In this document: positions 24,844-58,696 of the stretch, in pieces
Layout of the letters: the number at the start of each line of letters is the position of its first letter
Numbering within the stretch: the stretch's first letter is position 1
NCBI RefSeq assembly: GCF_006345805.1
Contig: NC_043026.1
Location: forward strand, 4,402,001 to 4,466,000
Source: Octopus sinensis
Taxonomy: Eukaryota
Reading direction: 5' to 3'
Length of the DNA stretch: 64,000 nt
The notes under the pieces: model-generated
Told to the model about the DNA's origin: nothing
Seen by the model: only the letters and a program-made list of their open reading frames with translations
Database searches by the model: none
Made by a program: the position numbers and the translations under genes

Positions 24844-25225
24844 GTGGAACAAAATCTGATACACAAAGTATTGAAAGATTAAATGTTTCCATTGTTTAAT
24901 ACTTACGGAAATGTCTTTATAAAGGATGGTGTTGTTGTTGTTGTTATGAGGGCGTCGGGTGGTAGAGAAATGTTTTAGAAATGTATTGCCGAGTGAATTA
25001 ATAGAAATTCTGGCGCCAAACAAGCTTGTCAAGATGTAATGAATAGAAGCGGAAATAGGCTTAGTGCGCATGCGTATGTAATAGGTGTGTGTGATATTCA
25101 CATTTTGGCACAAGGCCAGCAATTTCAGGGGAGGGGAGGGTGCGTAAGTCGATTGCCGCGGACCTCAGTTGTTAACTGGTATTTATTTTATTGAACCCCA
25201 GCAAAAAGGTGAAAGGCAAACTTTA

Positions 25226-25972
25226 TTTCGATCTTTTCGCTTTGACCGGCAGATTTTTAAAATAATTTCCACGTAACTAAACACTTTTAAACTTCGTATA
25301 CTGGTAGAATGTGTTTATAAAACAACCTTTTTCTCTTGGCTTTCTTGAGAAAATTCTGTAGTTTGTAAGCTAATTGTTGTTTAATTTCTTGCATTTCGGC
25401 AATTTCAACCAATCAATGACGTCTATTGAGGTGAATTCAATTTCTGCCGTAAACATTTTCTGGCGGTGTCATATGAAAATGTCCCTGTTATTTATGAGAA
25501 AAAAGATACCCTGTGGCCATAAACTGAGGGGTCACTCGTAAACAGAGCTGGATAACAAAAGTGTTCCCTCTTTAGTGTCCACCCATAATTATGACCCTAG
25601 TTTCGATCTATTGCATTTCAATCTGTTTTAGGGTTAGGGTTAGGGTTAGATTTGGGTGAGGGTTAGGATTAGGGGTGGGGGGAAGGGTATCTTTTTTTCT
25701 TCAGGAATGTAAATAAACCCAATCTGTTTCTTAAATGAATATATAATATGTAATGTGTGTATCTGTGCAACAGAGAGGGAAATTAAAACTGCTTCTGTTG
25801 TGAACTTAGAATATGTGTTATTAATAAAAGTTTAATAACGATAATCTTTTATTCATACGAACTTCACTGATACGCAAATATGTCATAAATAACAGTGACA
25901 AATTCGTATGACACGGCCAGAAAATGTTGTTGACACACTTATGGCAGAAATTGAATTCACCTCGATAGACGT
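25226..25972. mobile_element. Non-autonomous DNA-element remnant with inner inverted arms (25419-25492 / 25888-25972) and a short (TTAGGG)n core
   Basis: The arms are reverse complements. The outer segment 25226-25370 matches the reverse complement of 36320-36457 and 50100-50240. Confidence 0.65.
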
Positions 25973-26399
25973 TTGTAATCTATGACATTTGGAAGATATT
26001 TATATCAAATTTCATTTAGAAAAACCCACTTTCCTAAAAGTTATGAGGCAAAAACTTGCATCTTGTGAATTTTCCCAACTACTCACCTGTTGCTTTCCGC
26101 GCATTTTTGTTTTCATATTCCTTTCCTACACATTTTTTTACACCTGTTGCACAATTTTTTCTTTTTTTTCCCTTTCCTGGTAATATTGTAAACATTAATC
26201 AAAGACCCTTTTGCAGAAAGTGTGCGTGAAGTTTCTGAAAATTTGCAAACGTTAGGTTTTGTTTCTCGTAAATTTCAGAGAAAATAAGAAAATATTCTAT
26301 AGCTACTTTCCAGAGTGTGTAGATTAGATTATATTGGACTTTAATAACAAAAATTCAAGAAATCTGGTTGGCTCCTATACATGATGGCTGCCCCCTCGT

Positions 26400-26770
26400 T
26401 ATCGAGTATGGCCATTGCACGAAGCTTAACTGTTACCGGTGCTGTGATCAGATGTGACTTTTTAGCCCAGCTAAAGATCTACAATGTCTTGTACAGAATT
26501 GGCAGCCAAAACCTTTACCGGCAATAGCCGGCTGTAGTTGTAACTGGGCTTCATGTACCTTTGCATGTCGTTTAAGTCCTCCTGCCGAATTACTCTCTCT
26601 TCCACATGCCTGACAGATATATGATTAGAATGGTGTGTTACACCACCACCACCAGTGGCCAGGTTGTCACTCATTTGTCTTGCTTTATGACTACGAACAT
26701 GACACTTGAGTCCAGCTTTACTGAGGCAGGGTCTTGCACAGACACTGCATGTCAGCATCATAGGAAGACC
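26400..26770 (-). mobile_element. Probable LINE (RTE-like) C-terminal zinc-finger fragment
   Basis: LTCSVCARPCLSKAGLKCHVRSH plus a second CxxC..GGLKRH motif. No TGEKP linkers, unlike the cluster ZNFs. Confidence 0.45.
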
Positions 26771-27113
26771 CTATACCCTATAGGCTCCTATACATACATA
26801 GGAAGACCCTATACCCTATAGGCTCTTATACATACATCACAATTTTTTTCGAAATTTCTAGTTTTATTGTAAGGTATGTGTTAGTAAGTATAGATCTCAT
26901 CTTGCATAAGAAAATCTGATATAATTGTAATCTACACCATCTGAAGGGCATTTCTAGAAAATTTCCTGAAGAATTACCTATTTTTCGGAATGTTATGATG
27001 AAAGAAATGCAACAAGTGTTCTTTCCCGAAACACATACGCCACCCTCAGAAAATACATTTTCTAAACAAATTCTGAGATAATCAGAATCTACATTATCTG
27101 AATAGTATTTATA

Positions 27114-27290
27114 GGCGCAGGAGTGGCGGTGGGTGTGGTAAGTAGCTTGCTAACCAACCACATGGTTCCGGGTTCAGTCCCACTGCGTGGCATCTTGGGC
27201 AAGTGTCTTCTGCTATAGCCCCGGGCCGACCAAAGCCTTGTGAGTGGATTTGGTAGACGGAAACTGAAAGAAGCCGTCGTCGTATATATG

Positions 27291-27325
<35 letters not shown>

Positions 27326-27556
27326 ATATATCTGTATGTGTGTATGTTTTGTGTCTGTGTTTGTCTGTTAGCATTGCTTGACAACCGATGCTGGTGTGTT
27401 TACGTCCCCGTAACTTAGCGGTTCGGCAAAAGAGACCGATAGAATAAGTACTGGGCTTACAAAGAATAAGTCCCGGGGTCGATTTGCTCGACTAAAGGCG
27501 GTGCTCCAGCATGGCCGCAGTCAAATGACTGAAACAAGTAAAAGAGTAAAAAGAGA
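27114..27556 (+). mobile_element. Octopus-type tRNA-derived SINE, full length
   Basis: Same head, (TA)n middle and AAAAGAG tail as the other copies. Confidence 0.9.
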
Positions 27557-27875
27557 GAGTATAGAAAGTTTAATTAAAAATTATCACTTTCTGTGGAAGT
27601 TGTGAGGAAACAAAGGGGGGGCGGGGCATACATTTGTAGGTGGGCTGGAATTTGAACTCAAATGGACGAAATACTGCTTAGCATTTTCATTGCAGATAGC
27701 AGGGTCACACAAATGACCCCTGTGTCAGTGGCACGTAAATGCACCCATTACACTCTTGGAAAAGTTGGCATCCAGCTGTTGAAACCCTGCCAAATAAGAC
27801 TGGAGTCAGGTGCTGCCTTCCATTTCACTAGCCCCACTCCAACCCAATCCATCATGGACAACAGATGTTAAAAGA

Positions 27876-27948
<73 letters not shown>

Positions 27949-28377
27949 AGAGATATAAGAAAATTATTGACAAACATCCTTACAGCTGTTTCAATTACGG
28001 ATGTTCAGAAAATTAATAAAATTAAAAATCATTGGGAAGTCGAATTTCCTCTGCAGTCATTTACTCAATAAATCAGTAATTGAATGCCTATTTTCTATAA
28101 CGAGATTCGACTTTCAAATAATCTTTAATTTTATTGATTACTTTTCTGAAGGTTTGGAATCGAAACAGCTGTAAGGGATGTTTGTCATTTTTCAATTCAA
28201 AAATAATAACTTATTAATTACCTCTCTATCTTCTTACAATGAATAAATATATATAAACCACGGTTTATATAGTTGCTTGCAGTTGAGTATTAAATGTAAT
28301 GATCAACATTCCTTGTATCGGTAACTAACCAGTGCTTTCATAGGATTTTGCTATCCCTTAATGAGGTTTCTAACCTT

Positions 28378-28440
<63 letters not shown>

Positions 28441-28469
28441 ATATATATATATATAGGTATATATTTATA

Positions 28470-28790
28470 GACATCATCATCATCATTGTTCGAGACAATG
28501 GAATTTACTGTGTTTCGCCAGACTTCACGGTCCATCATAGCATTACGGATGGTCCTGTTGCTGGATGCCTGTATCCCTGGAGATTACATCAGGGTAGGAG
28601 AGTGTGCGCCCTCTGGTATCGCAAGCAGATGGCTTCCAGAGGAGAAGAGTAGAAATTCCCTCGTTTTCAGCTCTACAACAATGTCCAGCCAACTGGACTC
28701 TTCTACTTTCACAAGAGATGACACAGGTGGTAGTTTCCCATATATTTGCACTTTGGTTGGATGACGCTTCCACCAGAGATTTTGATTTTT
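28470..28790 (-). mobile_element. RTE/RTE-X-like LINE 3' end with (GAT)n tail
   Basis: RRVQLAGHCCRA...STLLLWKPS...RGRTLSYPDVISRDTG...NAMMDREVWRNTVNSI. Confidence 0.75.
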
Positions 28791-30789
28791 ACAGACATAC
28801 ACATACAAGCACAAGGGTGTTGTCTATAAGGACTTTGCACGTAGGAGTAACTTCATCACCACACACCACTGCCATGGGCTGTAATCTTCTCAACCGTATT
28901 CTACCCTCCCACTTCAACGGGTCCAATATTAAACTGCTTCCCTTTTTCATATCATTCCCATTGTTTCAATACCCCAACCCATTTTCATTTACCCAAAGAA
29001 CTGCACCCCTCATGAACCCTCCCACCCGTACCCCATATTCTTCTTCTTGTCCACTTCAATACAGATTCAGCTCAGCATATATTGACCTCATCCAGTTGCT
29101 CTTAACCCTTTTGTCACTAACTCGGCCAGCCCCGGCTCTGGCTCTGTGGTAAAATGTCTTCTTTTCGTAAGTTCTGAATTAAAATCTTCCACCAAACCTT
29201 AGTCACAATTTATATTCCTAACACTAGCTTAATGATAACTAAGTTATTTTACTAAATTCTTTGTTATATTCAAAATAATTGAAAGAAACTCAGAGCATCT
29301 CAAAATAAATACAGTAACGAAGGAGTTAATTTTGCATCATCTTTGTTTGTGTTGCTGTGTGTTTCTTTCATCTTTTAATTCTTTCAGTCATTTGGCTGTG
29401 GCCATGCTGGGGCACCGCCTCGAAGAGATTTTATTCAAATAAATCCACCCTAGTACTTGTCTTTTTGTTAAGCCTGGTGCATATTCTATCAGTCCCTTTT
29501 GCTGAACTGCTATGTCACGAGAACGCACACAGACCACCACCAGTTGTCAAGCAATACTGAAAGACAAACACAAAGATGTATATAGATACGTATATATATA
29601 TATATATATATATATAATGAGTGTTGGTTATGAGTTTTATTTAAGTTAGCTGTGGCTGGTTCATCTTGATGTAGCTGTGTGTTGGTTCTGCATTAACTGG
29701 TCTAGTCTGTCTGCCTGGGGTTACCTTTATATAAACAAATGACAAGAAGAACCAGGTAAATTCAATGCAACTGTTTTTTATTACAACCCTTTATAAAAAT
29801 ACATGGCAAATGTCTTACAAATTGTGAAGTAACAGGTTTTGCAAGCTTTAACGAACTCTATCTGGAACAGTGGGAGTTGTATCACAGTTGAAATTCTGTA
29901 GCATTTTCATGGCTTGGTTCTGTTTGTTGTGCAGCATCGGTTATTCCGATCTCATCTCTCCTTTCTTCTCTCCGCTAAAGGCGTGAGGGACCATTCCTTA
30001 TGTAATGACTTGTGGACAGGAAGAGAATTTTTCTGTACTGGGATAAAAACTGTTGCTCAAACACCGGTTGGGTGGATAAGGCCCTTTGACATTTGGAACA
30101 GATTTAGTCCAACCCTAATCGCATGATCAATGTTGACAATACTGAAATACACACATCATCCAATGTCCGTTGTCCATTTTGGCGTGGGTTGCATAGTTTG
30201 ACCAGGGTTGGCAAGCAGGAAGGCTGGACCGGACACTAATCTAAGTTGGCATGATTGCTACGGATGAATACTCTTCCTAACACCAACCACTCTGAGAGTG
30301 TAATGGATGCCTTAGACCACCAACACCAGTCTCTGCCACAACACCAATTTCGCTTGGCTTGATAGGTCTTCTTCTCAGTTGACCTCGGTGCCACACAGTT
30401 TCATAACAAGATTCAAAATCTGGAAAAAGCTACTTCTATTAAAAAAAGGAACCCACAGTCTTTTTACGTGTTGTGACATAAACTACAGAGTTGGGAGATG
30501 GTTGCCACACACTGTTCTACCTCCTCTCTGGTGTGAATACATTTACAGTTAGAAAGATTGTCCCTTTTATTTTTTCTTCTTTGGCATAGAAGGAACTCTT
30601 ACAATTACAGCAATTCCCAATTCCCTGATGAATAGCTTGGTTATTGCCATGGAGAAAGCCCACAACAGTACCACCAATTTAGGAGGAGCTGAAAATGCTT
30701 ATGGTTCTTAAAATGGTCACATTGGTAGTCATACATCTATACCAATAGTTATACATTTAGTTAACACCAAAAGTACTGAGCAGTCATTT

Positions 30790-32332
<1,543 letters not shown>

Positions 32333-32904
32333 TATTTTTCTTCAAAAATCACAGTATATAATCTTTTTACACCTTTTTGATTCTATAGTCTTTTGTTTCC
32401 AAATATTTCGACTGCTCTATTTCTGTCCATTATCACCTTTGTCCCAAAGCTCTTTAGTAAATTTATCCAAGTTTAATTTGCACAAAGACTCATCTTGTAG
32501 ACACTCCAGCCAGTGATGTCCAGAAGGTTTGCTAATAACACCTTTCAGAGTAAATATATCAGAGGAATTCCACTGTAGATTTAGAGAAACAATCTTATAT
32601 ATCTGTTCTCTACAATATTTCCATTTTGGTCTTTAAAAGATGATAAATAATGAGAATGTATCTTCAGTTATGCCGATGTCATCTGATATTCTGAAATAAT
32701 AAAGAAACAACAGTGTAAGATAGAGAGGCTACTTAAAATATACAGATTCAACATTACTAAAGAGATAAACACAAGAAATAAACATTTAAATGAACAACAG
32801 AACTTTCTAATTTATTAAAATTTACATCAGAAAATCTTTTGTGAAGCTAACAGATTTCTAAACTCCAGCTACACATTCACACACACACACATATATTGGG
32901 CTTC

Positions 32905-33270
32905 TTCCAGTTTCTTATTTCTTTACTACCCACAAGGGGCTAAACACAAAGGGGACAAACAAGGACAGTCAAACGGATTAAGTTGATTACATCGACTCCA
33001 GTGCGTAAATGGTACTTATTTAATCGACCCCGAAAGGATGAAAGGCAAAGTCAACCCTGGCGGAATTTGAACTCAGAACGTAGCAGCAGACGAAATACCT
33101 ATTTCTTTACTAGCCACAAGGGGTTAAACACAGAGAGGTCAGATAAATGGATTAAGTCGATTACATCGACCCCAGTGCGTAACTGGTACTTATTTAATCG
33201 ATCCCAGTGCGTAATTGGTACTTATTTAATCGACCCCGAAAGGCAAAGTCGACCCTGGTGGAATTTTTCT
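32905..33270 (-). mobile_element. Two tandem partial copies of a third SINE family (ATCGACCCCGAAAGGATGAAAGGCAAAGTC type)
   Basis: Recurs at 46140-46490, 35740-35845, 49525-49630 and 25145-25225. Confidence 0.7.
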
Positions 33271-34762
33271 CAATTGTTTTCTCAACATTTCTGGGGTTGG
33301 AGATTATTTTAAGAATATTCTCCATCTAAAACACACAACAAACAAACGATGGAGCGTGTAGAAGGTTGCCGCCATAGCTAGAAATAGCAGCCAAATAACC
33401 GTAAGATTGCCTAGATAAAGATAAATAGACAGAGATAGGATGAGAGAGATAGAGATAGAGGGAGAGATGGTAGGTCTACTGTTTAGTGCCCCACTGAATT
33501 TTTTCCTCATAATTTTCAGAAAAATACATATTATTAACGAAATTTTGAAGAAATACATTTTAAAGTCGTTTTGAATGATAATATTCCTTTTACGGCCTTA
33601 TTCCGCTGTATTTTGTTTAATAAAATATGTAAGAAAAAAAATGTGGAGCAAGATTTAGATGTTTCAGCTTCATCCGAGCCTACAATTCCGAAAGTAGACA
33701 CACACCGAAAAGAAACAAACAGATTTTGACAAATTTTCTAAAAGGAAAAACAAATTAAAAGAACATAAAATATGCTTAATTTTTTGTTGCTTCATCGAAA
33801 TAAAAATTTCTTTACACAAACTTAATTGGAGCTCATTTTTCTCAATAATGTGCTCAAGGTTTTCTCAGTAGGATGTGCTTACTTTGAGATGGTAAATATG
33901 TTGTAAAGGTTTATTATTCGTCAAAAAGAAAAAACAATACATTCGTACAAACTTTTGTTGTCCAATAAAACACCCTCCACACAAAGCAAACTTTGTGGGG
34001 TTGCCGGTTTAGTCCCTGACAGCCCGACCATGCAAAAGGTTGTACTGGGTTACATGTTACCAGTAGCACTCGAAAGTCACCTGGCACACATATGTATATA
34101 TATATATATATTGATTTGAAAACCCCACTAAAATGGGAGAAAGCGCAAATACATGATCTAAGTTATATGATGTATAAAAACATGAAATATACAAATAAAT
34201 ATCTGTAAATATAAACCATCCGATTTTCTGAGTACCTCATTTCTTCTAATATAAAATACCTGTACATCATCTCCAAACCTTCCAATATATATATATATAT
34301 ATAAAGCATACCACTGGTATTTGAGTACTCTTTTTTCCACCTTGTTTCACATTTATGTGTTTACTCCGGTATATATATATATATATACATGTATGTATGT
34401 ATACACATATCCACACAAACTAATCTCTGTTGGTATTCGAGATACTTTCTTCCATTTTGCAGTTTCATGAAACAGTTCATCGAAATAAAAATCACTTTAC
34501 ACAAACTTAATTGGCGCTCATTTTTCTCAATAAAATGCTGCAAGTCTTCTCGATATGAGATCCTAAATAAAGCTGTGTAGGGTTTATACTCATGAAAAGA
34601 AAACCAAAAATTCCTTTGAAATGGGAAGGAACGAAAATTTGAGAAATTCTGGAAAAGAAGAAGAATAAAATAAAAGGCTTACCTTAATTATTTGTTGCCT
34701 CTTTCCTCGGTCGACATTTGAAAATCTTTGCAAGTTTTGAGAAGATGTCGTCTGCTCTGAAA

Positions 34763-35371: not shown

Positions 35372-35852
35372 GACATACATAGATACATACACACACACAC
35401 ACATATATAAAACAGTACTGATGCATCATTATATATATATATATATACAATATATAATCTATATATCTCCATATCTAAATATCTGTATACCAATATACAC
35501 GTATCTAGGGTTATGGAAAAAAAGGAAAAATTAAGAAATGCGGAAAGTGGGTGCGAAATTTATGAATGCCAATTATTGGCAATTTTCCAGAATTTCCTTA
35601 TCCGAAAACGGGGTTTTTTGGCAAAAAATAAGAAAAAAAAAGGGAGAAAATTGGGGGTAGGGACGGGGGGAAGTCTTTCCTTCTTTTCTACTCTAGGCAC
35701 AAGGCCCCAAATTTTTCTTGGGTGGGTGGGGGGGGGGGCAGTCGATTAGATCGATCACCGTACACAACTTGTATTTAATGTATAGACTCCGAAAGGATGA
35801 AAGGAAAAGTCGTCCTTGGCGGGATTTGAACTCAAAACAGACAGACGAAATA

Positions 35853-35892
35853 CCGCATGCGCACAATCATACTTCCGTTTCCGTCATCAGCT
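35853..35892 (+). promoter_or_regulatory. Candidate core promoter cluster for ZNF-C: NRF1-like CGCATGCGCA, ETS-like CTTCCGTTTCCG, CRE half-site CGTCA
   Basis: CpG-containing motifs packed into 40 bp of otherwise CpG-poor DNA; duplicated at ~49636-49675. A similar GTGCGCATGCG lies at ~25065, upstream of ZNF-A. Confidence 0.35.
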
Positions 35893-36128
35893 GAAAAGTG
35901 TTCTTGTCATCAATATTTTGTAATATTTACAATTACACATTTATAATAACATGGCTCAACCACCACACACACACTTACAACAACTTCATCCTTTATAAAG
36001 AAGAAGATTTCCCTAAGTATTAAACTCGGAAAATATTCAATGTTTTTAAATCTGTAGACGATCGTTTGTTTGTTTTTTTTTGTCTCTTCTGTGTTTTATG
36101 GAAGAGAGACATCTTTGATTTGTGCGGG

Positions 36129-36290
36129 ATTTGGCTGCTATTTCTAGCTGTGGATGAGAGATGTTCACGATTTGTTCGAGATTTGGCTGCTATTTCTAGC
36201 TATGGATGAGAGACGTTCACGATCTGTTCGAGATTTGGCTGCTATTTCTAGCTGCGGATGAGAGATGTTCACGATCTGTTCGAGATTTGC
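36129..36290 (+). repeat. 52-bp minisatellite with core ATTTGGCTGCTATTTCTAGC (3 full units plus a partial)
   Basis: Cores at 36129, 36181 and 36233. Duplicate at ~49910-50070. Confidence 0.95.
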
Positions 36291-36820
36291 CGAAATGCTC
36301 GAAATTTCAGACGAAATATCTTACAAACTATAGAATTTTCTCAATAAAGCCAAGAGAAAATGATGTTTTATAAACACATTCTACCAGTATACGAAGTTTA
36401 AAAGTGTTTAGTTACCTAGAAATTATGTTACAAAGTGCCGTTCAAAAGGAAAAGATCCTTGGCTGCTATTTCTAGAATTATTTCTGCATTAGATTTCCGA
36501 ATGGGAAATCGGTGTCAGATAGTTGATTCGGTCATTGCTGTTCGTGACTTGACACAAAGAAACTCTATTCTTAGTGAGATTCGAGTCATAACAAATAGCA
36601 TGACATCGATTATGGAATTCCTTGCGTCTGTAGGACGAATACGAAATTCATCCGAGTGCTACAACGACTGGACGTTCCTGACACCGAGGAAAGGAACGTC
36701 CGAAGGAATGATGTGAAAACGTCCGGCTTGCAGGCGCAATCACAGTTTAAGAGAAAATCCATTGGACAGTATTATACTGCTTAATTATACTATGAATTCC
36801 ATAAAATTCAGTGTATAGTC

Positions 36821-37047
36821 GGTACTACTAGCGAACAGTGGTCCCGGTGCGCGCAGTCACGCATCCGCACTAGCTAGTCGTAAGTAGTCGATCCTACAAC
36901 GACTACCTAGCAAAGTAAATAAAACACAAAATAAATAATTTTTGTTAAACAAAGTAAATAAAACACAAAAACACAAAGTAAGGATCGGCTAGTCACGACT
37001 AGCTAGCGCGAGTGCCTGCACCGGGACCACTCTTCTTAAGTAGTACC
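36821..37047. mobile_element. MITE with GGTACTACT...CAGTGGTCCCGGTGC TIRs
   Basis: Imperfect ~60-bp inverted termini; related copies at 50621-50819 and 60752-61053. Confidence 0.8.
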
Positions 37048-37066
37048 TATCCATGATTTGTGCGAG

Positions 37067-37250
37067 ATTTGGCTGCTATTTCTAGAAATGTAAAGAGAGA
37101 TGTCTTTGTTTTGTGCGAGATTTGGCTGCTATTTTTAGCAATGGAAGAGAGATGTCTTTGTTTTGGGCGAGATTTGGCTGCTATTTCTAGCAATGTAAAG
37201 AGAGATGTCTTTGTTTTGTGCGAGATTTGGCTGCTATTTCTAGCTATGGA
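37067..37250 (+). repeat. 52-53-bp minisatellite with the same 20-bp core (4 units)
   Basis: Cores at 37067, 37120, 37172 and 37225. Confidence 0.95.
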
Positions 37251-37502
37251 TGTTATTACCTGCTCTTCTGCAGTTTAATCCAAATAATCTTACACAATGT
37301 GAAGGTGTAGCTGTGGTTTACAAATATGTAAGCTACACACAAGATTCTGGGATGTAAATTTTAATACATTAAAAAGTTCAGTTGTTCGGGTAAATGCTTA
37401 TTTCTAAAGTTTATCTCTGTAGAAATGTTGTCAATTTTCCACTGTTGAATCTGTATTTTGAAAGCAGCTTCTTTATCTTACACTGTTGTTTCTTTATTAG
37501 TT

Positions 37503-37833
37503 CAGAATATCGGATGACATTGGAATAACAGAAGATCTATTCTCAGTATTTATCATCTTTTGAAACTGAAAGAAAATTCTATACAAATTCTATAACACTT
37601 TCTATATATATGCTGTGAATTTCTGTGAAATATTTGTTCTAATCTGATGTGATTAGCAAAAGTTTTGCACATCACTGTCTGCAGTGCCGAGAAGATGAGT
37701 TTGTGTGCTTGGATACGTTTACATAAATGTTATTAGAGCAGGGAAACAATGGAGAGAAAATCAGGAGTGGAAGAATTTGTGAGATTAAACGATAAGAAGA
37801 AAAACAAGAAAAGTATATTTACATTGTGATTTG
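37503..37833 (+). pseudogene. Orphan ZNF-C leader exon cut off about 12 nt before its ATG by the duplication junction
   Basis: Acceptor TTCAG|AATATCGGATGAC and leader match 51382-51709, then the sequence switches to RTE 3'UTR. Confidence 0.85.
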
Positions 37834-38444
37834 CCGGTGGTACGTAAGAGAACCACCTGAACGTGGCCGTTGCCAGCGCTGCCCCGACTGGCCCCTGTGC
37901 CGGTGGCACGTAAAAAGCACCATCCGATTGTGGTCGTTTGCCAGCCTTGCTTGGCCCCCATGCCGGTGGCACATAAAAAGCACCCTCTACGCTCACGGAG
38001 TAGTAGGCGTTAGGAAGGGCATCCAGCCGTAGAAACATTGCCAGATCAGACTGGGCCTGGTGCAGCCTTCTGGCTTCCCAGACCCCAGTTGAACCGTCCA
38101 ACCCATGCTAGCATGGAAAGCGGACGCTAAACGATGATGATGATGATGAAGTTATCAAGAAACTATATATAAGGAAAATACTAACATAATTATCAAAGGG
38201 CAGTACCTATTCTATTGTAGTAAACTCAAGTAAAAGTAGACAATTACTGTAGGGTATCTAAGAAAAATTTACTCACAGAAATTACTGCCTAGGGTGCCAC
38301 CTATGGTCCACAATGGAGCAAGTCTAAGTAGAGTAGTCTCTCCAATTGGTCAATTACAATTTGAACTGAGGTCACAAGTTAAAACCATTAGAAAGGATTT
38401 GTTTGTAAAATAAAATAAGAAAAACGTTAAGGCAGGAGAAGTTA

Positions 38445-39250
38445 ATGATTTACCACAGATATTACAGGAATATGTCTCTCTTGAATGAACATGTTTGTGA
38501 GAAGTTTAAGTACTACTTTGATAGAATGATGTACCACAGATATTACAGTGATATGGCTTCTATCCTGTATGGACACATTTGTGTGTAGTCAAGATATTAC
38601 TTCGAGAGAATGATTTACCACAAATGTGACAATTTAAGGCACTTTGCTGAGAGAATGATGTACCACAGATATCACAATGATATGGCTTCTCTCCTGTATG
38701 AATACGTGTATGTCTAGTCAATGTAGCACTTATGGAGAATGACTTGCCACAGAATTCACAGTGAAATGGCCTTTCCCCTGTATAAACACGTATGTGAGAA
38801 TTTAAAGCACTTCGGTCAGAGAATGATGTACCACAGACATCACAGTGATAAGGCTTCTCTCCTGTATGAAGACGTTTGTGTCTATGCAAGTCACATTTTT
38901 GAAAGAATGATTTACTACAGATGTCACAGTGAAATGGCTTCTTCCCCGTATGGAAACGCATGTGTGAATTAAAAGCACTTTGATGAGAGAATGACATAAA
39001 ACAGACATCACAATGATAAGGTTTCTCCCCTGTATGAATGTTTGTGTGTAGTCAAGCTAATGTTTTTAGAGAAAGATTTCTCACAAATCATCATCATTAT
39101 CACCGTTACAGTGAAATGGCTTCTCCCCTGTATGAACACTTTGTATGTAAGACTTTAAGGCACTTTGGTCAGAGAATGATGTGCTGCAGACATCACAGTG
39201 GTAAGACTTCTCTCTAGTATGAATACGTTTGTGTGTAATCAAGTTACTAC
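38445..39250 (-). pseudogene. Degenerate C2H2 array (duplicate of 17270-18075)
   Basis: ORF 38560-38997 holds about 5 fingers; frameshifts on both sides. Confidence 0.85.
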
Positions 39251-39606
39251 ACTGAGGGACTGAAGACGTAATCTGAAATAAATTTCTTAATTTCGTTAAT
39301 GTTTTTACTCAGTAGAGTTAAGTGGGTCGTCATAAACTGGTGTGATAAATAGTGGGTCACGACTCTGAAAGGTTTGGGGACCACTGTTCTAGTGTTAACC
39401 GTTTAGCATTTAAACCAGCCACAACTGGCCCAAATATGCTACCTCTTTTATTTTCAAACTAACCAGAGTTGGCCTCTTACACCTACCCTACAATGTTATT
39501 CTAAAAATACTCAATCACATCGTCATCACTTGAAAGCTGTGAGTTAATGCAGGACAAATTGAAAATAACGTGAATAAACATCACATTGGACAGAATGAAC
39601 TACATG

Positions 39607-40001
39607 GGCGCAGGAGTGGCTGTGTGGTAAGTAGCTTGCTCACCAACCACATGGTTCCGGGTTCAGTCCCACTGCGTGGAATCTTGGGCAAGTGTCTTCT
39701 ACTATAGCCACAGGCCAACCAATGCCTTGTGAGTGGATCTGGTAGATGGAAACTGAAAGAAGCCTGTCGTATATATGTATGTGTGTGTATATGTTTGTGT
39801 GTCTGTGTTTGTCCCCTAGCATTGCTTGACAACCGATGCTAGTGTGTTTACGTGCCCGTCACTTAGTGGTTCGGCAAAAGAGACTGATAGAATAAGTACT
39901 GGGCTTACGAAGAATAAGTCCCGGGGTCGATATGCTCGACTAAAGGCAGTGCTCCAGCATGGCCGCAGTCAAATGACTGAAACAAGTAAAAGAGTAAAGA
40001 G
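39607..40001 (+). mobile_element. Octopus-type tRNA-derived SINE (no MITE insertion)
   Basis: Paralog of 18428-19548 at the same position in the duplicated block. Confidence 0.9.
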
Positions 40002-40337
40002 TATAGTAAAGGGTTAAGTCGTCACTTACAGGGAATGTTTTAGCACAAATATCAGTGGGAACACTTCAGCCCTGCCATGATCTCGTTTGTGAGAAGGTAA
40101 TTTGCTATTTTGAGTGAATGACTTCTTGTATGGATATGTCTGTGATCAGATAAGCGAGAACTCATAGTGAATGATTTCCCCACAGATATCATTGTGATAT
40201 GGTTTCTTTTCTGTGTGAATACGTCTGTGAGTTTCTGATTTGTCATTTCGGGAGAATTATTTACCACAGACATCACAGGAATAGGGTGTCTCAATAAATT
40301 AGCTTACTATTAAAAGAGAAATATTTGTTACAGATGC

Positions 40338-40676
40338 CTAGACTGGCTTCCGTGCCGGTGGCACTTAAAAAGCATCATCCAAATAGTGGCCGATGCCAGC
40401 GCTGCCCTGACTGGCTTCCGTGCCAGTAGCACGTAAAATGCACCAATCTGATCGTGGCCGTTGCCAGCCTCCCCTGGCACCTGTGCCGGTGGCACGTAAA
40501 GAGCACCCACTACACTCACGGAGTGGTTGGCGTTAGGAAGGGCATCCAGCTGTAGAAACACTGCCAGATCAGACTGGAGCCTGGTGCAGCCTTCTGGCTT
40601 CCCAGATTCCCGGTCGAACCGTCCAACCCATGCTAGCATGGAGAACGGACGTTAAACGATGATGATGATGATGATG
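40338..40676 (+). mobile_element. RTE 3'UTR-type repeat copy
   Basis: One internal repeat unit longer than its paralog at 19881-20145; (GAT)n tail. Confidence 0.8.
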
Positions 40677-40844
40677 TCACAGTCACATGGCTTCTCACCT
40701 GTATGGACACCTTCATGAGTTAAAGCACTGATGAAAGAGAAGAGATGTTACAGGAATATGGTGTCTCTCTTGAATGAAAATGTTTGTGAGAAGTTAAGCA
40801 CTACTTTGAGAGAAGGATTTACTACAAATGATACAGTTTCTATC

Positions 40845-41960
40845 CTATATGAACATGTATACGAGTACACCACAGTGATAAGGCCTCTCGCCGGCATGAA
40901 TACGTTTGTGACATTTTAAAACACTTTGGTCTGAGAATGATGTACCACAGATATCACAGTGATAGGGCTTCTCTGCTGTATGAACACGTAAGTGCCTAGT
41001 GAAGCTACCTTTTTGAGAGAATGATTTACCACAAGTGTCACAGTGAAGTGGCTTCTCTCCTGTGTGAACACGTTGGTGTATAGTCAAGTTATTACTTTGA
41101 GAGAAATATTTACCACAGATGTCACAGTGAAATAGCTTCTCTCCTGTATGAACACGTATGTGAGACTCCAAGGCATTTTGCTGAGAGAATGATGTACTGC
41201 AGACATTACAGTGAAACGGCTTTTCTCCAGTATGAACACGTTTGTGTGAAGTCAAGCTACCTTTCTGAGGGAATGATATACCACAAATGTCACAGTCATA
41301 TGGCTTATCTCCTATATGAATACGTTGGTGTTTGGTCAAGCTGTCTTTTCCCCGGAATGATTTATCACAGATGTCACAGTGAAATGGCTTCTCTCCTGTA
41401 TGAAAACGCTTGTGAGAATCTAAAGAACTCCGCTGAGAGAATGATGTACCACAGACATCACAGTGAAATGGCTTCTCTCCTGTATGAATATGCTTGTGTA
41501 TAGATAAACTACCATTTTGAGAGATTGATTTAGAACAGATGTCACAGTGATATGGCTTCTCTCCAGTATGAATACGTTTGTGTTGAGTCAGTGAAACATT
41601 TATAGAGAATGATTTACCACAAGTGTCACAGTGAAATGGCTTCTCCCCTGTATGGACACGTATATGAGAATTTAAAGCATTGTGGTCAGAGAATGACCTA
41701 CTACAGACATTACAGTGAAATGGTTTCTCTCCTGTATGAATACGTTTGTGTCTAGTCAAGTTACAACTCTGAGAGAATGATTTATCACAAATGTCACAGT
41801 GATAGGGCTTCTCTCCTCTATGAATATGTTTGTGCGTATTCAAGCTGCTCTTTTGAGAGAAAGACTTTTTACATACATCACACTCATGTGACAATTTTTG
41901 TCTCCCTTTTCCTCTATTTTCTGGAAAAATCAGTTTCTTTTTTTTCTCACTCTTTTCCAT
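40845..41960 (-). CDS. C2H2 zinc-finger protein ZNF-A, copy 2 (371 aa, 12 intact fingers)
   Basis: All Cys/His ligands present; acceptor near 42320. Confidence 0.9.
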
Positions 41961-42499
41961 TATTTTACTTCAAAAATCACAGTATATAATCTTTTTACAC
42001 CTTTTTGATTCTATAGTCTTTTGTTTCCAAATATTTCGACTGCTCTATTTCTGTCCATTATCACCTTTGTCCCAAAGTTCTTTAGTAAATTTATCCAAGT
42101 TTAATTTGCACAAAGACTCATCTTGTAGACACTCCAGCCAGTGATGTCCAGAAGGTTTGCTAATAATACATTTCAGAGTAAATATATCAGAGGAATTCTG
42201 CCATAGATTTATAGAAACAATCTTATATATCTGTTCTGTACAATATTTCCATTTTGGTCTTTGAAAGATGATAAATAATGAGAATGTATCTTCAGTTATG
42301 CCAATGTCATCTGATATTCTGAAATAATAAAGAAACAGTGTAAGATAGAGAGGCTACTTAAAAAAATACAGATTCATCATTTCTATAGAGATAAACTCTA
42401 GAAATAAACATTTAACTGAACAACAGAACTTTCTAATTTATTAGAATTTACATCAGAAAATCTTCTGTGAAGCTAACATATTTTTAAACTCCAGCTACA

Positions 42500-42547
<48 letters not shown>

Positions 42548-42774
42548 CTTTTCCTTGTGTCAGTTGTTTTGGCTGTGGCCATACTGGAGCATAACCTTAG
42601 AGAGTTTTAGTTGATCAAATCAACCCTAGGACTTCATTTTTGAGCCTAGTACTTATATTGGCCTCTTTTGTGAAACCACTAAATTATGGGGACATAAACA
42701 CACCAACACTGGTTATCAAGTGTTGGTGGGGCGTCAAACAGTCACAAAGACACACACACATATATAACTCTAAC

Positions 42775-43155
42775 TCTCTCTTTTAATTGTTTCAGTCATT
42801 TGACTGCGGCCATGCTGGAGCACCGCCTTTAGTCGAGCAAATCAACCCCGGGACTTATTCTTTGTAAGCCCAGTACTTATTCTATCGGTCTCTTTTGCCG
42901 AACCACTAAGTGATGGGGACGTAAACACACCAGCATCAGTTGTCAAGCGATATTGGAGGGGCAAACACAGACACACACATAAATATATATATATATATGC
43001 GACAGGCTTCTTTCAGTTTCCGTCTACCAAATCCACTCACAAGGCATTGGTTGGCCCGGGACTATAGCAGAAGACACTTGCCCAAGATGCCACACATGAA
43101 CCCGGAACCATGTGGTTGGTTAGCAAGCTACTTACCACACAGCCACACCTGCGCC
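42775..43155 (-). mobile_element. Octopus-type tRNA-derived SINE
   Basis: Paralog of 22231-22624. Confidence 0.85.
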
Positions 43156-44073
43156 TATGTATATACACATAAATACTCATTAATATACATATATATATAT
43201 TGGGCTTCTTTCAGTTTCCATCTACCAAATCCAATCACAAGGATTTGGTCGGCTAATGTCTGTTGTATAAAATACTTGCCTAAGTAGGTTCGCAGTGGGA
43301 CTGAACCTGGAAACATATATATATATGCTTACACGTTAATATATATGTGTGTGTATATATATACATGTGTGTGTATGTGAAGGTATTGGGGTTAGTGGTG
43401 TGAGCAATCAGCCCCTAATAAGGTCATAAATCCAATTCCCAGCAGCGTGCTGTGTTCTTGAGCAAGACATGTTGCTCCGGGTTCACTCAGCTGACAAAAC
43501 TGAATTGTACCAGTAATTTGAAGGGCCAGCCTTATCAAATGGTCACATGCTTAATATGTGAGAGCTCCGTTATGGGTGAGCGTGTCTGTGGGGTGCTCAG
43601 CCACTTAAATGTTAATTTCAAGAGTAGGCTGTTGTGTTGATTGGAATTAGAAAAGCCTGACAGGGAAAGAGGTGTCATTATACCATTGTAGGAAGGTAAA
43701 GGGGACTACCACAACTGCAACAATAAAAAGGGCTGCTTCTCTCCTCTCAGTTGCCACTAAGTCATCTGCTTGCTTCTCAGCAGTCAGGTTTCCCACCAAA
43801 GAGGCCAATACTGAAAACGTAAGGTCTTTAAAGTCTGAAGGAGAAAATACAAAAAAAAAGAAAGAAAGAAAGAAAGAAATTACTCATTTTGCCCCTCTAC
43901 TTATTTTTGTTCCCTTTCTCTATATCAAGAGATAAACATTCGATGCAGAAAGTGGTGTAGATGTTCTTCGGTTTTTATTTGGCTGTCTTCATATTTATTA
44001 TGGTTGAATGAGATATTCCCACAAAGATATTATATTTAAATTGACCTAATATGTTGGGACTGACATGTTCCCT

Positions 44074-45561
44074 TCATTTAACCATCTTACAAACGATAAC
44101 TCTGAGCACCTTTTCGAACTCCACCTGTCTAACATCACATCGATAAGGCTTCTCTCCAGTATGAATACATTTGTGTCTAGTTAATGTAATGCTTACAGAG
44201 AATGATTTACCACAGATGTCACACTGGAATGGTTTCTCCCCTGTATGAATACGTTTGTGTCTAGTCAAGCTACCTTTTTGGAAGAATGATTTACCACAGA
44301 TGTCACAATGAAATGGCTTCTCCCCTGTATGAATACGTTGGTGTGTAGTCAAGTTATTACGTTGAGGGAATGATTTACCACAGATGTCACAGTGAAATGG
44401 CTTCTCCCCTGTATGAATACGTTGGTGTGTAGTCAAGTTATTACGTTGAGGGAATGATTTACCACAGATGTCACAGTGAAATGGCTTCTCCCCTGTATGA
44501 ATACGTTGGTGTGTAGTCAAGTTATTACGTTGAGGGAATGATTTACCACAGATGTCACAGTGAAATGGCTTCTCCCCTGTATGAATACGTTGGTGTGTAG
44601 TCAAGTTATTACGTTGAGGGAATGATTTACCACAGATGTCACAGTGAAATGGCTTCTCCCCTGTATGAATACGTTGGTGTGTAGTCAAGTTATTACGTTG
44701 AGGGAATGATTTACCACAGATGTCACAGTGAAATGGCTTCTCCCCTGTATGAATACGTTGGTGTGTAGTCAAGTTATTACGTTGGGGGAATAATTTACCA
44801 CAGATGTTACAGTGAAATGGCTTCTTCTCTATATGAATACGTTGGTGTGTAGCCAAGTTATTACGTTGAGGGAATGATTTACCACAGATGTCACAGTGAA
44901 ATGGTTTCTCCCATGCATGAATACGTTGGTGTGTAGTCAAGTTATTACGTTGAGGGAATGATTTACCACAGATGTCACAGTGAAATGGCTTCTCCCCTGT
45001 ATGAATACGTTTGTGTGTAGTCAAGTTACTTTTTTGAGGGAATGATTTACCACAGATGTCACAGTGAAATGGCTTCTTCCCTGTATGAATACGTTTGTGT
45101 CTAGTCAAGTTACTTTTTTGAGAGAATGATTTACCACAGATGTCACAGTGAAATGGCTTCTCCCCTGTATGAATACGTTGGTGTGTAGTCAAGTTATTAC
45201 GTTGAGGGAATGATTTACCACAGATGTCACAGCGAAATGGCTTCTCCCCTGTATGAATACGTTTGTGTGTTGTCAAGTTATTACTTTGAGGGAATGATTT
45301 ACCACAGATGTCACAGTGAAATGGCTTCTCCCCTGTATGAATACGTTGGTGTGTAGTCAAGTTATTACTTTGAGGGAATGATTTACCACAGATGTCACAG
45401 TGAAATGGTTTCTCCCCTGTATGAATACGCTTGTGCATACTTAAGTGACCTTTTCGAGAGAATGACCTTTTACAGACATCACACTCATGGGACAATTTTT
45501 GTCTCCCTTTTCCTCTATTTTCTGGAAAAATCAGTTTCTTTATTTTCTCACTCTTTTCCAT
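44074..45561 (-). CDS. ZNF-B copy 2 (495 aa, 16 fingers, mostly [10 protein letters not shown]); last ~19 aa come from antisense CR1 sequence after a deletion
   Basis: 24 + 16x28 + 23 aa = 495. The ORF runs across the 44132-44134 junction and ends [19 protein letters not shown]. Confidence 0.9.
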
Positions 45562-47314
45562 TATTTTTCTTCAAAAATCACAGTATATAATCTTTTTACA
45601 CCTTTTTGATTCTATAGTCTTTTGTTTCCAAATATTTCGACTGCTCTATTTCTGTCCATTATCACCTTTGTCCCAAAGCTCTTTAGTAAATTTATCCAAG
45701 TTTAATTTGCACAAAGACTCATCTTGTAGACACTCCAGCCAGTGATGTCCAGAAGGTTTGCTAATAACACATTTCAGAGTAAATATATCAGAGGAATTCC
45801 ACTGTAGATTTAGAGAAACAATCTTATATATCTGTTCTCTACAATATTTCCATTTTGGTCTTTAAAAGATGATAAATAATGAGAATGTATCTTCAGTTAT
45901 GCCGATGTCATCTGATATTCTGAAATAATAAAGAAACAACAGTGTAAGATAGAGAGGCTACTTAAAAAATACAGATTCAACATTACTAAAGAGATAAACA
46001 CAAGAAATAAACATTTAAATGAACAACAGAACTTTCTAATTTATTAAAATTTACATCAGAAAATCTTTTGTGAAGCTAACAGATTTCTAAACTCCAGCTA
46101 CACATTCACACACACACACATATATTGGGCTTCTTCCAGTTTCTTATTTCTTTACTACCCACAAGGGGCTAAACACAAAGGGGACAAACAAGGACAGTCA
46201 AACGGATTAAGTTGATTACATCGACTCCAGTGCGTAAATGGTACTTATTTAATCGACCCCGAAAGGATGAAAGGCAAAGTCAACCCTGGCGGAATTTGAA
46301 CTCAGAACGTAGCAGCAGACGAAATACCTATTTCTTTACTAGCCACAAGGGGTTAAACACAGAGAGGTCAGATAAATGGATTAAGTCGATTACATCGACC
46401 CCAGTGCGTAACTGGTACTTATTTAATCGACCCCAGTGCGTAATTGGTACTTATTTAATCGACCCCGAAAGGCAAAGTCGACCCTGGTGGAATTTTTCTC
46501 AATTGTTTTCTCAACATTTCTGGGGTTGGAGATTATTTTAAGAATATTCTCCATCTAAAACACACAACAAACAAACGATGGAGCGTGTAGAAGGTTGCCG
46601 CTATAGCTAGAAATAGCAGCCAAATAACCGTAAGATTGCCTAGATAAAGATAAATAGACAGAGATAGGATGAGAAAGATAGAGATAGAGGGAGAGATGGT
46701 AGGTCTACTGTTTAGTGCCCCACTGAATTTTTTCCTCATAATTTTCAGAAAAATACATATTATTAAGGAAATTTTGAAGAAATACATTTTAAAGTCGTTT
46801 TGAATGATAATATTCCTTTTACGGCCTTATTCCGCTGTATTTTGTTGAATAAAATATGTAAGAGAAAAAATGTGGAGCAAGATTTAGATGTTTCAGCTTC
46901 ATCCGAGCCTACAATTCCGAAAGTAGACACACACCGAAAAGAAACAAACAGATTTTGACAAATTTTCTAAAAGGAAAAACAAATTAAAAGAACATAAAAT
47001 ATGCTTAATTTTTTGTTGCTTCATCGAAATAAAAATTTCTTTACACAAACTTAATTGTCGCTCATTTTTCTCAATAATGTGCTCAAGGTTTTCTCAGTAG
47101 GATGTGCTTACTTTGAGATGGTAAATAAGTTGTAAAGGTTTATTATTCGTCAAAAAGAAAAAAACAATACATTCGTACAAACTTTTGTTGTCCAATAAAA
47201 CACCCTCCAAACAAAGCAAACTTTGTGGGGTGCCGGTTTAGTCCCTGACGGCCCGACCATGCAAAGGGTTGTACTGGACTACATGTTACCAGTAGCACTC
47301 GAAAGTCACCTGGT

Positions 47315-47346
<32 letters not shown>

Positions 47347-47606
47347 TGATTTGAAAACCCCACTAGAATGGGAGAAAGCTCTAATACATGATCTAAGTTA
47401 TATGATGTATAAAAACATGTAATATACAAATAAATATCTGTAAATATAAACCATCCGATTTTCTGAGTACCTCATTTCTTCTAATATAAAATACCTGTAC
47501 ATCATCTCCAAACCTTCCAATATATATATATATATATATATAAAGCATACCACTGGTATTTGAGTACTCTTTTTTCCACCTTGTTTCACATTTATGTGTT
47601 TACTCC

Positions 47607-47689
<83 letters not shown>

Positions 47690-48763
47690 ACAATAATTGT
47701 TTCTTGTCAGGAACAAAAAAAGGTTTAATAGGACTGCAATAGAAGTGCTCTATTGGAAGAGACAAAAATATCAAACTAGAATCATTGAACAAGCAAATAC
47801 AAAGTCAACCGCATGTCATTTCATAATTCGAACATTTAATTATAGAATAAACATATAACCCGCAAGATGGAACAAAATTCATATGTACAGCACGTAATAA
47901 TAATAATATGGTATGGTGCGAGAAAAATTCTTATCATTAAAACCTAGAATTAATATTCTAGCGATTCAAAGAGAATACATTTATAAAAGGACGTAGAAAG
48001 TAAAATATAATATAAGTAATATATAAAAATATATAGGTATATAAAAATATAGACATATAAAAATATATAAAACATATATAAATATATATACATATAGGAG
48101 CATATAAAAAATATAATATAAATGTATATATCGTGTAAATAAAGTAAAATAAGGTTCATCGTTTAGAAATCTTAATCAGGTAAAATAAGCCGTATATATA
48201 AGAAGGAAATCATGTTTACTTATCCCTATGGCCATTTCAGGGGTGTATTATGTGTAAAGCACTAGGGTGCATTCAGATAATACCTCCTTCGTCAGGGAAA
48301 AAAAAAATATATATATATATATAAACGCAAAGATAGCCATCACGCACCAGAGAAATTCTGGAAAAGAAGAAGAATAAAATAAAAGGCTTACCTTAATTAT
48401 TTGTTGCCTCTTTCCTCGGTCGACATTTGAAAATCTTTGCAAGTTTTGAGAAGATGTCGTCTGCTCTGAAAGTCACGTGACACTTAACACGCGCTTTCCC
48501 CCTCCCACTTCCACTTCTATTCTCACTCCCACTTCCACTCTCACTCATTCCTTTACACGGGGTATGATGTGGGTAGTATGCATATGCGTGTGTATTTCGT
48601 TTTCCGTTTTCTTGTTTTTTGTTTTTTGGCTTTTTCTGTTTCTACGTCTTATTGTGATGTCCTGTACTTCCGTATAATTATTTATATATGCATGTATATA
48701 TACATGTAGATGTAGGTACGTACATATATGTTTGTATGTATGCATATATTTTTATTTATCTCC

Positions 48764-48825
<62 letters not shown>

Positions 48826-51721: not shown

Positions 51722-58696
<6,975 letters not shown>

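Follow-up and report, generated by a model that had tools for sequence, protein, structure and literature searches.

A conserved block of about 25 bp in the 5' module of an Octopus zinc-finger gene subfamily, a candidate protein-binding element also found in 52/53-bp tandem arrays

Main finding

A sharply bounded block of about 25 bp is conserved in the 5' module of one subfamily of C2H2 zinc-finger (ZNF) genes in a 64,000-nucleotide stretch of the Octopus sinensis genome (contig NC_043026.1), the whole of which is referred to here as the window. With confidence that we would put at about even, the block is most likely a protein-binding cis-element, and the tandem arrays in which it also occurs are minisatellite expansions. 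Judged from the aligned paralogs, the conservation of its core is a true phylogenetic footprint, from which we infer protein binding, selection behind the footprint and any effect on transcription.

The block can be written as (CGAG)ATTTGGCTGCTATTTCTAGCT.TGG, or as the search string TTGGCTGYTATTTCTAG, and has at its centre the 20-mer ATTTGGCTGCTATTTCTAGC, hereafter the core. With up to three mismatches allowed, the 20-mer has 27 matches in the 64-kb window against 0.01 expected from dinucleotide-preserving shuffles, which bears out the initial annotation in describing a 20-bp motif that is almost invariant. All gene-linked copies share the orientation of their gene, again as had been proposed.

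Arrays and single copies of the core

The arrays were delimited with Tandem Repeats Finder (TRF). The arrays, single cores and degenerate copies of the window are as follows.

36117-36289, plus strand: array A1, 52-bp unit x 3.3, with three perfect cores (36129, 36181 and 36233)
37057-37248, plus strand: array B1, 53/52-bp units (105-bp dimer) x 3.6, with four cores; heads the truncated ZNF-C'
49900-50072, plus strand: array A2, 52-bp unit x 3.3; segmental duplicate of array A1
50829-51125, plus strand: array B2, 53-bp unit x 5.6, with six cores; duplicate of array B1, about 600 bp 5' of the ZNF-C ATG (51722)
60540-60754, plus strand: array C, 52-bp unit x 4.1; older and more diverged, with the last unit split by a MITE
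24824-24843, minus strand: single perfect core of the ZNF-A1 5' module, 3.4 kb from the ORF with an intron-like segment of about 2.7 kb between
33377-33396, minus strand: single perfect core of ZNF-B1, the ORF of which is broken
46606-46625, minus strand: single perfect core of ZNF-B2 (intact ORF of 495 aa); duplicate of 33377
36457-36476, plus strand: degenerate core standing alone where segment X ends, reading CCTTGGCTGCTATTTCTAGA; its duplicate is 50240-50259
10017-10272, minus strand: decayed three-unit array, spacing 97/113 bp, distant from ZNF genes; TCATGCTAGAAA is invariant in all three units
11118 (plus) and 11641 (minus): inverted pair of degenerate units in arms 11097-11140 and 11638-11681 (44 nt, 84% complementary), distant from ZNF genes

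The TRF periods are 52 and 53 bp, with every array on the plus strand, in agreement with the 52–53 bp reported earlier; units match at 82–94% and number 3.3–5.6 per array. Cores are 52 bp apart in the A and C arrays, while in the B arrays the distance alternates between 53 and 52 bp, so that these arrays consist of 105-bp dimers of two alternating subunits. Array C is the positional homolog of array A, within the 5' region of ZNF-D. The three single copies placed by the initial annotation at 24823, 33377 and 46606 are indeed perfect singles on the minus strand, the first position being corrected to 24824.

The count of four units in one duplicate and six in the other was confirmed: there are four cores at 37.1 kb and six at 50.8 kb, a difference of one 105-bp dimer between duplicates that are 94–98% identical. 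Units of 52/53 bp arranged head-to-tail, with a copy number that shifts between close copies, are what defines a minisatellite or VNTR. The period had also been equated with about five helical turns, which would put all sites on one face of the DNA. The arithmetic stands (52/10.5 = 4.95; 52–53 bp correspond to 4.95–5.05 turns), but it carries no evidence, because the spacing of every tandem repeat is constant by nature. Of periods chosen arbitrarily, about 3 in 10 would come to no more than 1 bp from some multiple of 10.5.

Segmental duplication and the number of independent copies

The regions 16663-37833 and 37832-51709 form a tandem segmental duplication with an identity of 94–98%, the second copy missing 7.3 kb (23571-30905). 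The arrays at 49.9 and 50.8 kb are therefore copies of those at 36.1 and 37.1 kb, and the single core at 46606 is a copy of that at 33377. All five arrays first listed (36.1, 37.1, 49.9, 50.8 and 60.6 kb) are present, but only three are independent. The independent lineages comprise array types A, B and C, the ZNF-A1 core, the ZNF-B core, the solo core at 36457 (equivalent to 50240) and the degenerate units at 10.0–11.7 kb; the paralog comparison rests on four independent lineages, all within one 64-kb window.

The duplication junction at 37833 severs ZNF-C' 12 bp short of its ATG, leaving no coding exon behind the arrays of the interval originally reported (36129-37250), and the next ZNF sequence beyond them is on the opposite strand. 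The statement that the arrays lie upstream of ZNF genes is right in that they occupy the 5' regions of ZNF paralogs. It has to be amended in two respects: the arrays at 36129-37250 head no ZNF coding exon, and the gene-linked core is 0.6–3.4 kb away from the coding exon, with an intron-like segment between.

The ZNF genes and their state

The ZNF loci of the window are listed below.

20315-21430, minus strand: ZNF-A1, open ORF of 371 aa
40845-41960: ZNF-A2, duplicate of ZNF-A1, the 5' module of which went with the 7.3-kb deletion
19898-21352 and 40896-41882, minus strand: fingers of the two ZNF-A copies
30850-32254 (broken) and 44161-45483 (intact, 495 aa), minus strand: fingers of the two ZNF-B copies
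17.4 and 38.6 kb, minus strand: degenerate ZNF pair
51722-58633, plus strand: ZNF-C, in which some 82 out-of-frame finger units of 84/82 bp (fingers 51769-58588) come after the ATG
62727-63998, plus strand: ZNF-D (fingers from 62844), a pseudogene with two in-frame stops in the finger linkers followed by a frameshift

In ZNF-C the first finger is not in frame with the ATG (51722), and no open stretch exceeds 349 aa. Its finger units include 49 of 84 bp, 19 of an amplified, frameshifted 82-bp variant and five of 83 bp. ZNF-A and ZNF-B have in common an N-terminus of 16 residues. A search with the N-terminus only matched two Octopus proteins, one O. bimaculoides protein being its sole database relative; searches with the full-length ZNF proteins were dominated by vertebrate KZFPs. 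ZNF-A1 and ZNF-B2 had no exact match in public assemblies, among them assemblies of RNA-seq data, and eight ORFs of the window were likewise absent from a collection of 15 billion proteins. A neighbouring ORF of 1,811 aa has its closest relatives in O. sinensis (86–92%), O. vulgaris (74–89%) and O. bimaculoides (48–77%), which puts the window in the O. vulgaris/sinensis group or close to it.

Arrays occur only at ZNF-C, its truncated duplicate ZNF-C' and ZNF-D, whereas the intact ORFs of ZNF-A1 and ZNF-B2 have one core each. Since the arrays are thus confined to broken or truncated copies, the proposal of a copy-number-tunable module was not supported, although this association, with two lineages on each side, is only suggestive as an argument against tuning. 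Because they mark dead copies, the arrays make better sense as a site-bearing segment that grew in minisatellite fashion than as a tuning device. The core is missing from ZNF-A2, where it was deleted, and from the pseudo-ZNFs at 17.4/38.6 kb.

Layout of the 5' module

The segments that make up the module, apart from the core, are given here.

35824-36071, plus strand: flank U of ZNF-C', holding the CGCATGCGCA palindrome and a TATA-like/splice-donor-like block; duplicate at 49607-49854
24874-25103 (minus strand, ZNF-A1) and 60328-60540 (plus strand, ZNF-D): homologs of flank U, identity 59–64%
24711-24823, minus strand: segment of about 110 bp just 3' of the core, 90–91% identical between ZNF-A1 and ZNF-B (33273-33376); candidate first exon
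45555-46125, minus strand: 3' end of the ZNF-B2 intron, acceptor, 5' UTR and ATG, with tttcag/AATATCAGA at about 45921
32326-32896 (minus), 21424-21995 (minus), 37300-37833 (plus), 51177-51749 (plus) and about 62234-62726 (plus): homologs of the ZNF-B2 intron-end/5' UTR segment

The anatomy of the module and the paralogy of its copies are directly observed. The 230–350 bp 5' of the core, or of the first array unit, are collinear in ZNF-A1, ZNF-C and ZNF-D (Smith-Waterman z = 14.8 and 26.7 against shuffles), with concordant results from BLAST and MAFFT. Between ZNF-A1 and ZNF-B, homology begins at the first base of the core and continues for 120–128 bp at 91% identity, with none 5' of the core; it then lapses and is found again over 572 bp (96%) at the end of the intron and in exon 2. 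Homology at both the core and exon 2 assigns the copy at 24824 to the 5' module of ZNF-A1 across the intervening 2.7 kb or so. ZNF-B retains only the core and about 110 bp downstream of it. Its intron-like stretch contains SINE-like insertions and closes with a polypyrimidine tract and tttcag/AATATCAGA; from there a 5' UTR of about 360 bp, interrupted by in-frame stops, leads to the ATG. The core thus has a homologous place in the collinear 5' modules of ZNF-A1, ZNF-B, ZNF-C and ZNF-D. Since single cores stand in ZNF-A1 and ZNF-B where ZNF-C and ZNF-D carry arrays, the arrays reached their places by descent with the gene, not by separate insertion.

Farther 5', the CGCATGCGCA palindrome lies about 270 bp ahead of the core (25065, 35854 and 49637; 0.56 expected). 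The sequence CATCCTTTATAAAG...TTTCC/GTAAGT is situated 78 nt 5' of the core, with GTGAGT in ZNF-D and CTAAGT in ZNF-C in place of the final hexamer. If this block is a TATA box, the core would come to lie at around +45 of the transcript, in the 5' UTR; if it is a splice donor, the core would fall in intron 1. The TATA-like and donor-like cues conflict, and the core may belong to the promoter, the 5' UTR or intron 1. Crude scoring of splice donors around the core was too blunt to separate exon from intron. That ZNF-B has no recognisable flank homology would fit a transcription start near the core.

These cues also bear on whether the element might act in RNA, the core lying in the first exon or first intron and serving as a translational/uORF signal, as a splicing element or as a target of small RNAs. 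Such a role would agree with the fixed orientation relative to the gene, with the Kozak-like ATG (AGCTATGG) that follows the core in most copies, with a TATA-like box 78 nt upstream that would bring the core to about +45, and with the donor-like GTAAGT/GTGAGT that would bring it into intron 1. The ATG, however, is lost at the copy of the intact ZNF-B2 (ATA at 46606) and in the A-type units (TGTGG/TGCGG), the 52-bp period is not a multiple of three, fold z-scores range from -1.2 to +1.4 over both strands, and there were no Rfam hits at gathering score. We consider a function in RNA quite improbable.

Conservation of the core

The comparison of core and spacer used 17 complete units, aligned with gaps. 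Across the three array types, none of the 20 core columns is variable against 15 of the 33 spacer columns, and the invariant run extends over 24 columns (CGAG plus the core; scan statistic P~4e-4, with post hoc choice allowed for). Within the young arrays the difference is non-significant, variable columns numbering 1/20 (core) and 4/33 (spacer) in type A and 2/20 and 6/33 in type B. Inside the older array C the figures are 1/20 and 11/33 (p = 0.02). The initial annotation's contrast of a kept core with diverged spacers consequently applies between array types and to array C, but not inside young arrays A and B.

The same signal is found outside the arrays. In the flanks of ZNF-A1, ZNF-C and ZNF-D, 47% of the columns are invariant, and a run of 21 invariant columns falls at the core (P~5e-6); adding ZNF-B to the test gives an upper bound of 2e-10. 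Because the block is letter-perfect while its surroundings have fallen to about 60% identity, it is probably a protein-binding control element.

A different account would make the arrays a neutral minisatellite, the core being invariant for non-selective reasons such as recent ancestry, short-tract gene conversion or a low local mutation rate. The restriction of arrays to dead or truncated genes, the differing copy number of near-identical duplicates and the equal variability of core and spacer inside arrays A and B are all as expected under neutrality, and the core contains no CpG. This last property explains little, as no more than 3 of the roughly 24 variable sites can be put down to CpG transitions. 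Gene conversion is disfavoured because the edges of the block are sharp, and conversion, working in tracts, would homogenise the flanks too. Neither the retention of the core in the old, diverged array C nor a 21-bp invariant run set in flanks of 59–64% identity is easily reconciled with neutral drift, and we judge this account to be rather unlikely. One counter-point to selection should be stated: well-kept cores are also found at pseudogenes and at the truncated fragment, where selection on a promoter is not expected. They would be expected there only if gene death was recent or if the element is independent of the coding sequence.

Relation to mobile elements

Two copies of a MITE-like family lie at the edges of arrays.

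36821-37047: MITE-like element with TIRs of about 75 bp, adjoining array B1; duplicate at about 50621-50819
60755-61050: second MITE copy, an independent insertion of opposite orientation that interrupts the final unit of array C

That two such insertions arose independently at the edges of arrays hints at a site preference. A composite element made up of MITE and array was considered and rejected, the junctions being different and the orientations relative to the array opposite. A short element beside the degenerate units at 10.0–11.7 kb is related to sequence upstream of ZNF-A1. Given this resemblance, the decayed units may be relics of a lost 5' module.

The unit could alternatively derive from a mobile element or satellite, for instance from a non-autonomous DNA element in which it was a subterminal repeat bound by the transposase or a tandem repeat of the interior. 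In that case the 5' region of the ZNF genes would be TE-derived, with the core conserved for its past service to the element or through recent insertion. Several observations are in keeping with such an origin: the decayed units far from ZNF genes, among them the three-unit array at 10017-10272; the inverted arms at 11097-11140 and 11638-11681 (84%), which hold the core plus spacer-like flank; the homology of ZNF-A1 and ZNF-B, which begins exactly at the 5' edge of the core; the MITE family that adjoins arrays at two independent sites; and the start of flank U at almost one point in three paralogs. Against it, the position of the arrays within collinear paralogous flanks means that they were passed on with the gene, and every strong copy in the window is part of a ZNF 5' module. 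None of the arrays is bounded by TIRs or by a target-site duplication (TSD), the only TIR structures found being the separate MITE and one inverted degenerate pair without a visible TSD. Further octopod ZNF loci, about 50 kb in all, contained no related copy, nor did a scan of 241 million metagenome records. An origin from a mobile element or satellite is on this evidence unlikely, if well worth keeping in view.

Candidate binding proteins and distribution

Part of the core, CTATTTCTAG, is one mismatch from the MEF2 consensus CTA(A/T)4TAG, and the unit at 37129 matches it perfectly, from which the core might be taken as a MEF2 site and the arrays as helically phased MEF2 clusters. The resemblance, pointed out in the initial annotation, occurs at chance frequency in AT-rich DNA: the window has 64 matches to CTAWWWWTAG with at most one mismatch, where 47 +/- 7 would be expected, and the core itself supplies 27 of them. 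The rule of a central A/T stretch in YTA(A/T)4TAR is moreover broken by a C at position 7 that is fixed in all copies except 37129, and conservation runs about 10 bp past the decamer (TTGGCTG), which is more than MEF2 needs. Identity as a MEF2 site is accordingly very improbable.

Binding by a ZNF protein encoded in the cluster had been suggested as well. Applied to ZNF-A1, ZNF-A2, ZNF-B2, ZNF-C and ZNF-D, a crude canonical recognition code gave no match to the block above shuffled controls.

An extension to the ZNF clusters of cephalopods in general did not hold in the loci scanned, as no copy with four or fewer mismatches was present in the ZNF loci of O. vulgaris (L001) and Argonauta hians (L007) or in a Logan contig (L008). 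The O. vulgaris locus is a fair within-group negative control. A core-like site in it, with three mismatches and at the right distance, is weak and was dismissed as chance. Matches to the exact 20-mer in metagenomes were confined to five contigs representing two unrelated sequences without flank homology, and were likewise put down to chance. The core sequence is not printed in any paper of the searchable literature.

Proposed history and function

The block would be part of the 5' module in a single C2H2-ZNF subfamily that is young and specific to Octopus and whose proteins begin with the 16-residue N-terminus mentioned above. The module appears to have spread by gene and segmental duplication; because of that mode of spread, the motif copies would be related by descent and not separately acquired. 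As reconstructed, the module begins with the flank containing the CGCATGCGCA palindrome and the TATA-like/donor-like block, followed after about 80 bp by the core and then by about 110 bp of well conserved sequence. Next would come a variable, TE-laden, intron-like stretch, the acceptor, the 5' UTR and a single coding exon. Within the module the block may act as a sequence-specific protein-binding site, in the capacity of a promoter-proximal or first-intron cis-regulatory element, with purifying selection holding it while the flanks drift. At 17–25 bp, the footprint would fit a multi-finger protein or a composite site more readily than one small factor. A short segment bearing the block was probably amplified, by unequal exchange or slippage, in the ancestor that ZNF-C and ZNF-D have in common; the resulting 52/53-bp minisatellite is still shifting in copy number (4 versus 6).

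A more specific version would have the block as the docking site of a dedicated multi-zinc-finger regulator acting over the whole ZNF subfamily, either in promoter choice of the kind known for CTCF at the protocadherin CSE or as a nucleator of repressive chromatin across the cluster. The arrays would on that model be binding-site sinks or boundary elements and not promoters, and for this reason the cores of dead copies would have stayed intact. We regard a dedicated regulator of this kind as a long shot.

Comparison with known systems

The conserved sequence element (CSE) of the clustered protocadherin (Pcdh) promoters is about 22 bp in length, is bound by the 11-zinc-finger protein CTCF and is needed for transcription (PMC3333863). 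It resembles the octopus block as a core of about 22 bp at a fixed 5' place in the paralogs of a tandem family, conserved far above its neighbours and with a footprint of a length that suits a multi-finger protein. The two sequences are unrelated, and CTCF binding and the need for transcription were demonstrated for the CSE, whereas the octopus block is a putative binding site. Unlike the octopus arrays, the CSE occurs once per promoter, and the octopus element, unlike the CSE, is missing from two of six ZNF loci.

The FiNZ-ZNF genes of zebrafish chromosome 4 share TATA-box/sharp-TSS promoters that are tied to early zygotic waves of expression, according to a passage of Wells et al. 2023 (PMC10547256) citing Hadzhiev et al. 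As portrayed in that passage, they too are a lineage-specific, fast-duplicating ZNF family in which a promoter design was inherited by duplication (PMC10547256). The design as given there consists of a TATA box and a sharp TSS, whereas the octopus feature is a specific block of about 25 bp.

Promoter minisatellites or VNTRs include the MAOA uVNTR and the INS VNTR, and minisatellites of the Jeffreys type have a shared core; human promoter VNTRs have measured effects on transcription. The octopus arrays agree with promoter VNTRs in having head-to-tail units of tens of bp near the 5' end of a gene, a copy number that shifts between close copies and a short core common to arrays that otherwise differ in unit sequence. 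They differ from the human cases by standing at pseudogenes, and an effect on expression is unlikely to matter for those copies.

In mollusc DNA transposons and elements of the MITE/Helitron type, subterminal or internal tandem repeats have been described. The regular period of a short motif, the one inverted pair of units and the MITEs close by are reminiscent of such subterminal repeat arrays; in contrast to these, the octopus arrays are without TIR or TSD and lie within collinear paralogous gene flanks.

Significance

The value of these observations is local, covering one subfamily in one window. The expansion of C2H2-ZNF genes in octopus is among the largest outside the vertebrates and, to our knowledge, almost nothing is known of how these genes are controlled. 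The arrays at dead copies raise the question of why their cores stay intact. The case shows regulatory sequence, if the block is such, travelling with segmental duplication, and the element of about 25 bp would provide a concrete, testable handle on the control of octopus ZNF genes.

Tandem duplication of the ZNF region

Part of the window has arisen in two copies showing 94–98% identity:
16663–37833 versus 37832–51709, tandem segmental duplication

The duplicated unit measures 14–21 kb, its second copy being without 7.3 kb (23571–30905), a loss that includes the 5' module of ZNF-A, i.e. the core-bearing region upstream of the coding exon. The junction lies 12 bp upstream of the start codon of ZNF-C. 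An interstitial telomere-like repeat, (TTAGGG)x8, is located at 25628–25674 in the segment found only in copy 1.

Zinc-finger repeats

Among the zinc-finger gene copies, ZNF-B and ZNF-C contain the following arrays:
44147–45429 and 30897–32200 (-), ZNF-B finger repeats, 84-bp units
51722–58633 (+), ZNF-C finger-unit repeat

ZNF-B possesses about 15 near-identical units (92–93%), the fingers having been amplified recently inside this gene. Thirteen of its helices have the form Q(R/S/K)(N/S)NL(T/A)T; under the simple recognition code, such helices are predicted to bind a (TAA)n-like target. The intron between the core, the conserved 20-bp motif, and exon 2 is occupied by SINE-like insertions (GGGGTCGATTAAATAAGTACCAGTTACGCACTGG...; 33165–33237, 46160–46530, minus strand), and a piece resembling these interrupts segment X where it lies upstream of ZNF-A1.

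ZNF-C comprises some 82 units with 94% identity; their lengths include 84 bp (n=49), 82 bp (n=19; an amplified, frameshifting variant) and 83 bp (n=5). The first finger is not in frame with the ATG, the reading frame stays open for 349 aa at most, and ZNF-C looks like a satellite derived from zinc-finger sequence.

Upstream flanks

Two further elements were found in or related to the ZNF 5' flanks:
25065–25074, 35854–35863 and 49637–49646, perfect CGCATGCGCA palindrome, ZNF-A1 and ZNF-C flanks
10487–11100, ~80-bp repeated element, spacing 160–320 bp

In the flanks of both genes, the palindrome is kept at ~270 bp upstream of the core; at no more than one mismatch, it gave 5 matches against 0.56 expected. 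It resembles an NRF1-type site and is a candidate for the actual promoter.

The ~80-bp element lies directly upstream of an orphan, degenerate core at 11118. Since two repeats upstream of ZNF-A1 (25419–25497; 25883–25972) are related to it (81%), this kinship suggests that the 10–11.7 kb region may be a relic ZNF 5' module.

Other repeats

36821–37047, about 50621–50819 and 60755–61050, MITE-like element with terminal inverted repeats (TIRs)
13089–13367 and 40341–40507, 63–68-bp tandem element with GTGCCGGTGGCACGTAAAAAGCACC

The MITE-like element is 227–296 bp long, with TIRs of ~75 bp beginning GGTACTACTAG...AGTGGTCCCGGTGC. The window's two independent insertions, in opposite orientations, both lie at the edge of or within a 52-bp array of core-bearing units; no clear target-site duplication was seen for them.

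The 63–68-bp element is probably a SINE-like repeat common across Octopus. The O. vulgaris ZNF locus L001 contains a related unit (17745–17899), and the duplication unit opens with related sequence (16663/37833).

A large orphan ORF

3832–9267 (+), uninterrupted ORF of 1,811 aa

This ORF has no Pfam or PDB match and just 26 relatives among 1.84 billion representatives. The seven closest were looked up, all being "uncharacterized" Octopus proteins, with identities of 86–92% in O. sinensis, 74–89% in O. vulgaris and 48–77% in O. bimaculoides. Its predicted product is a member of an orphan family of very large proteins limited to the genus Octopus.
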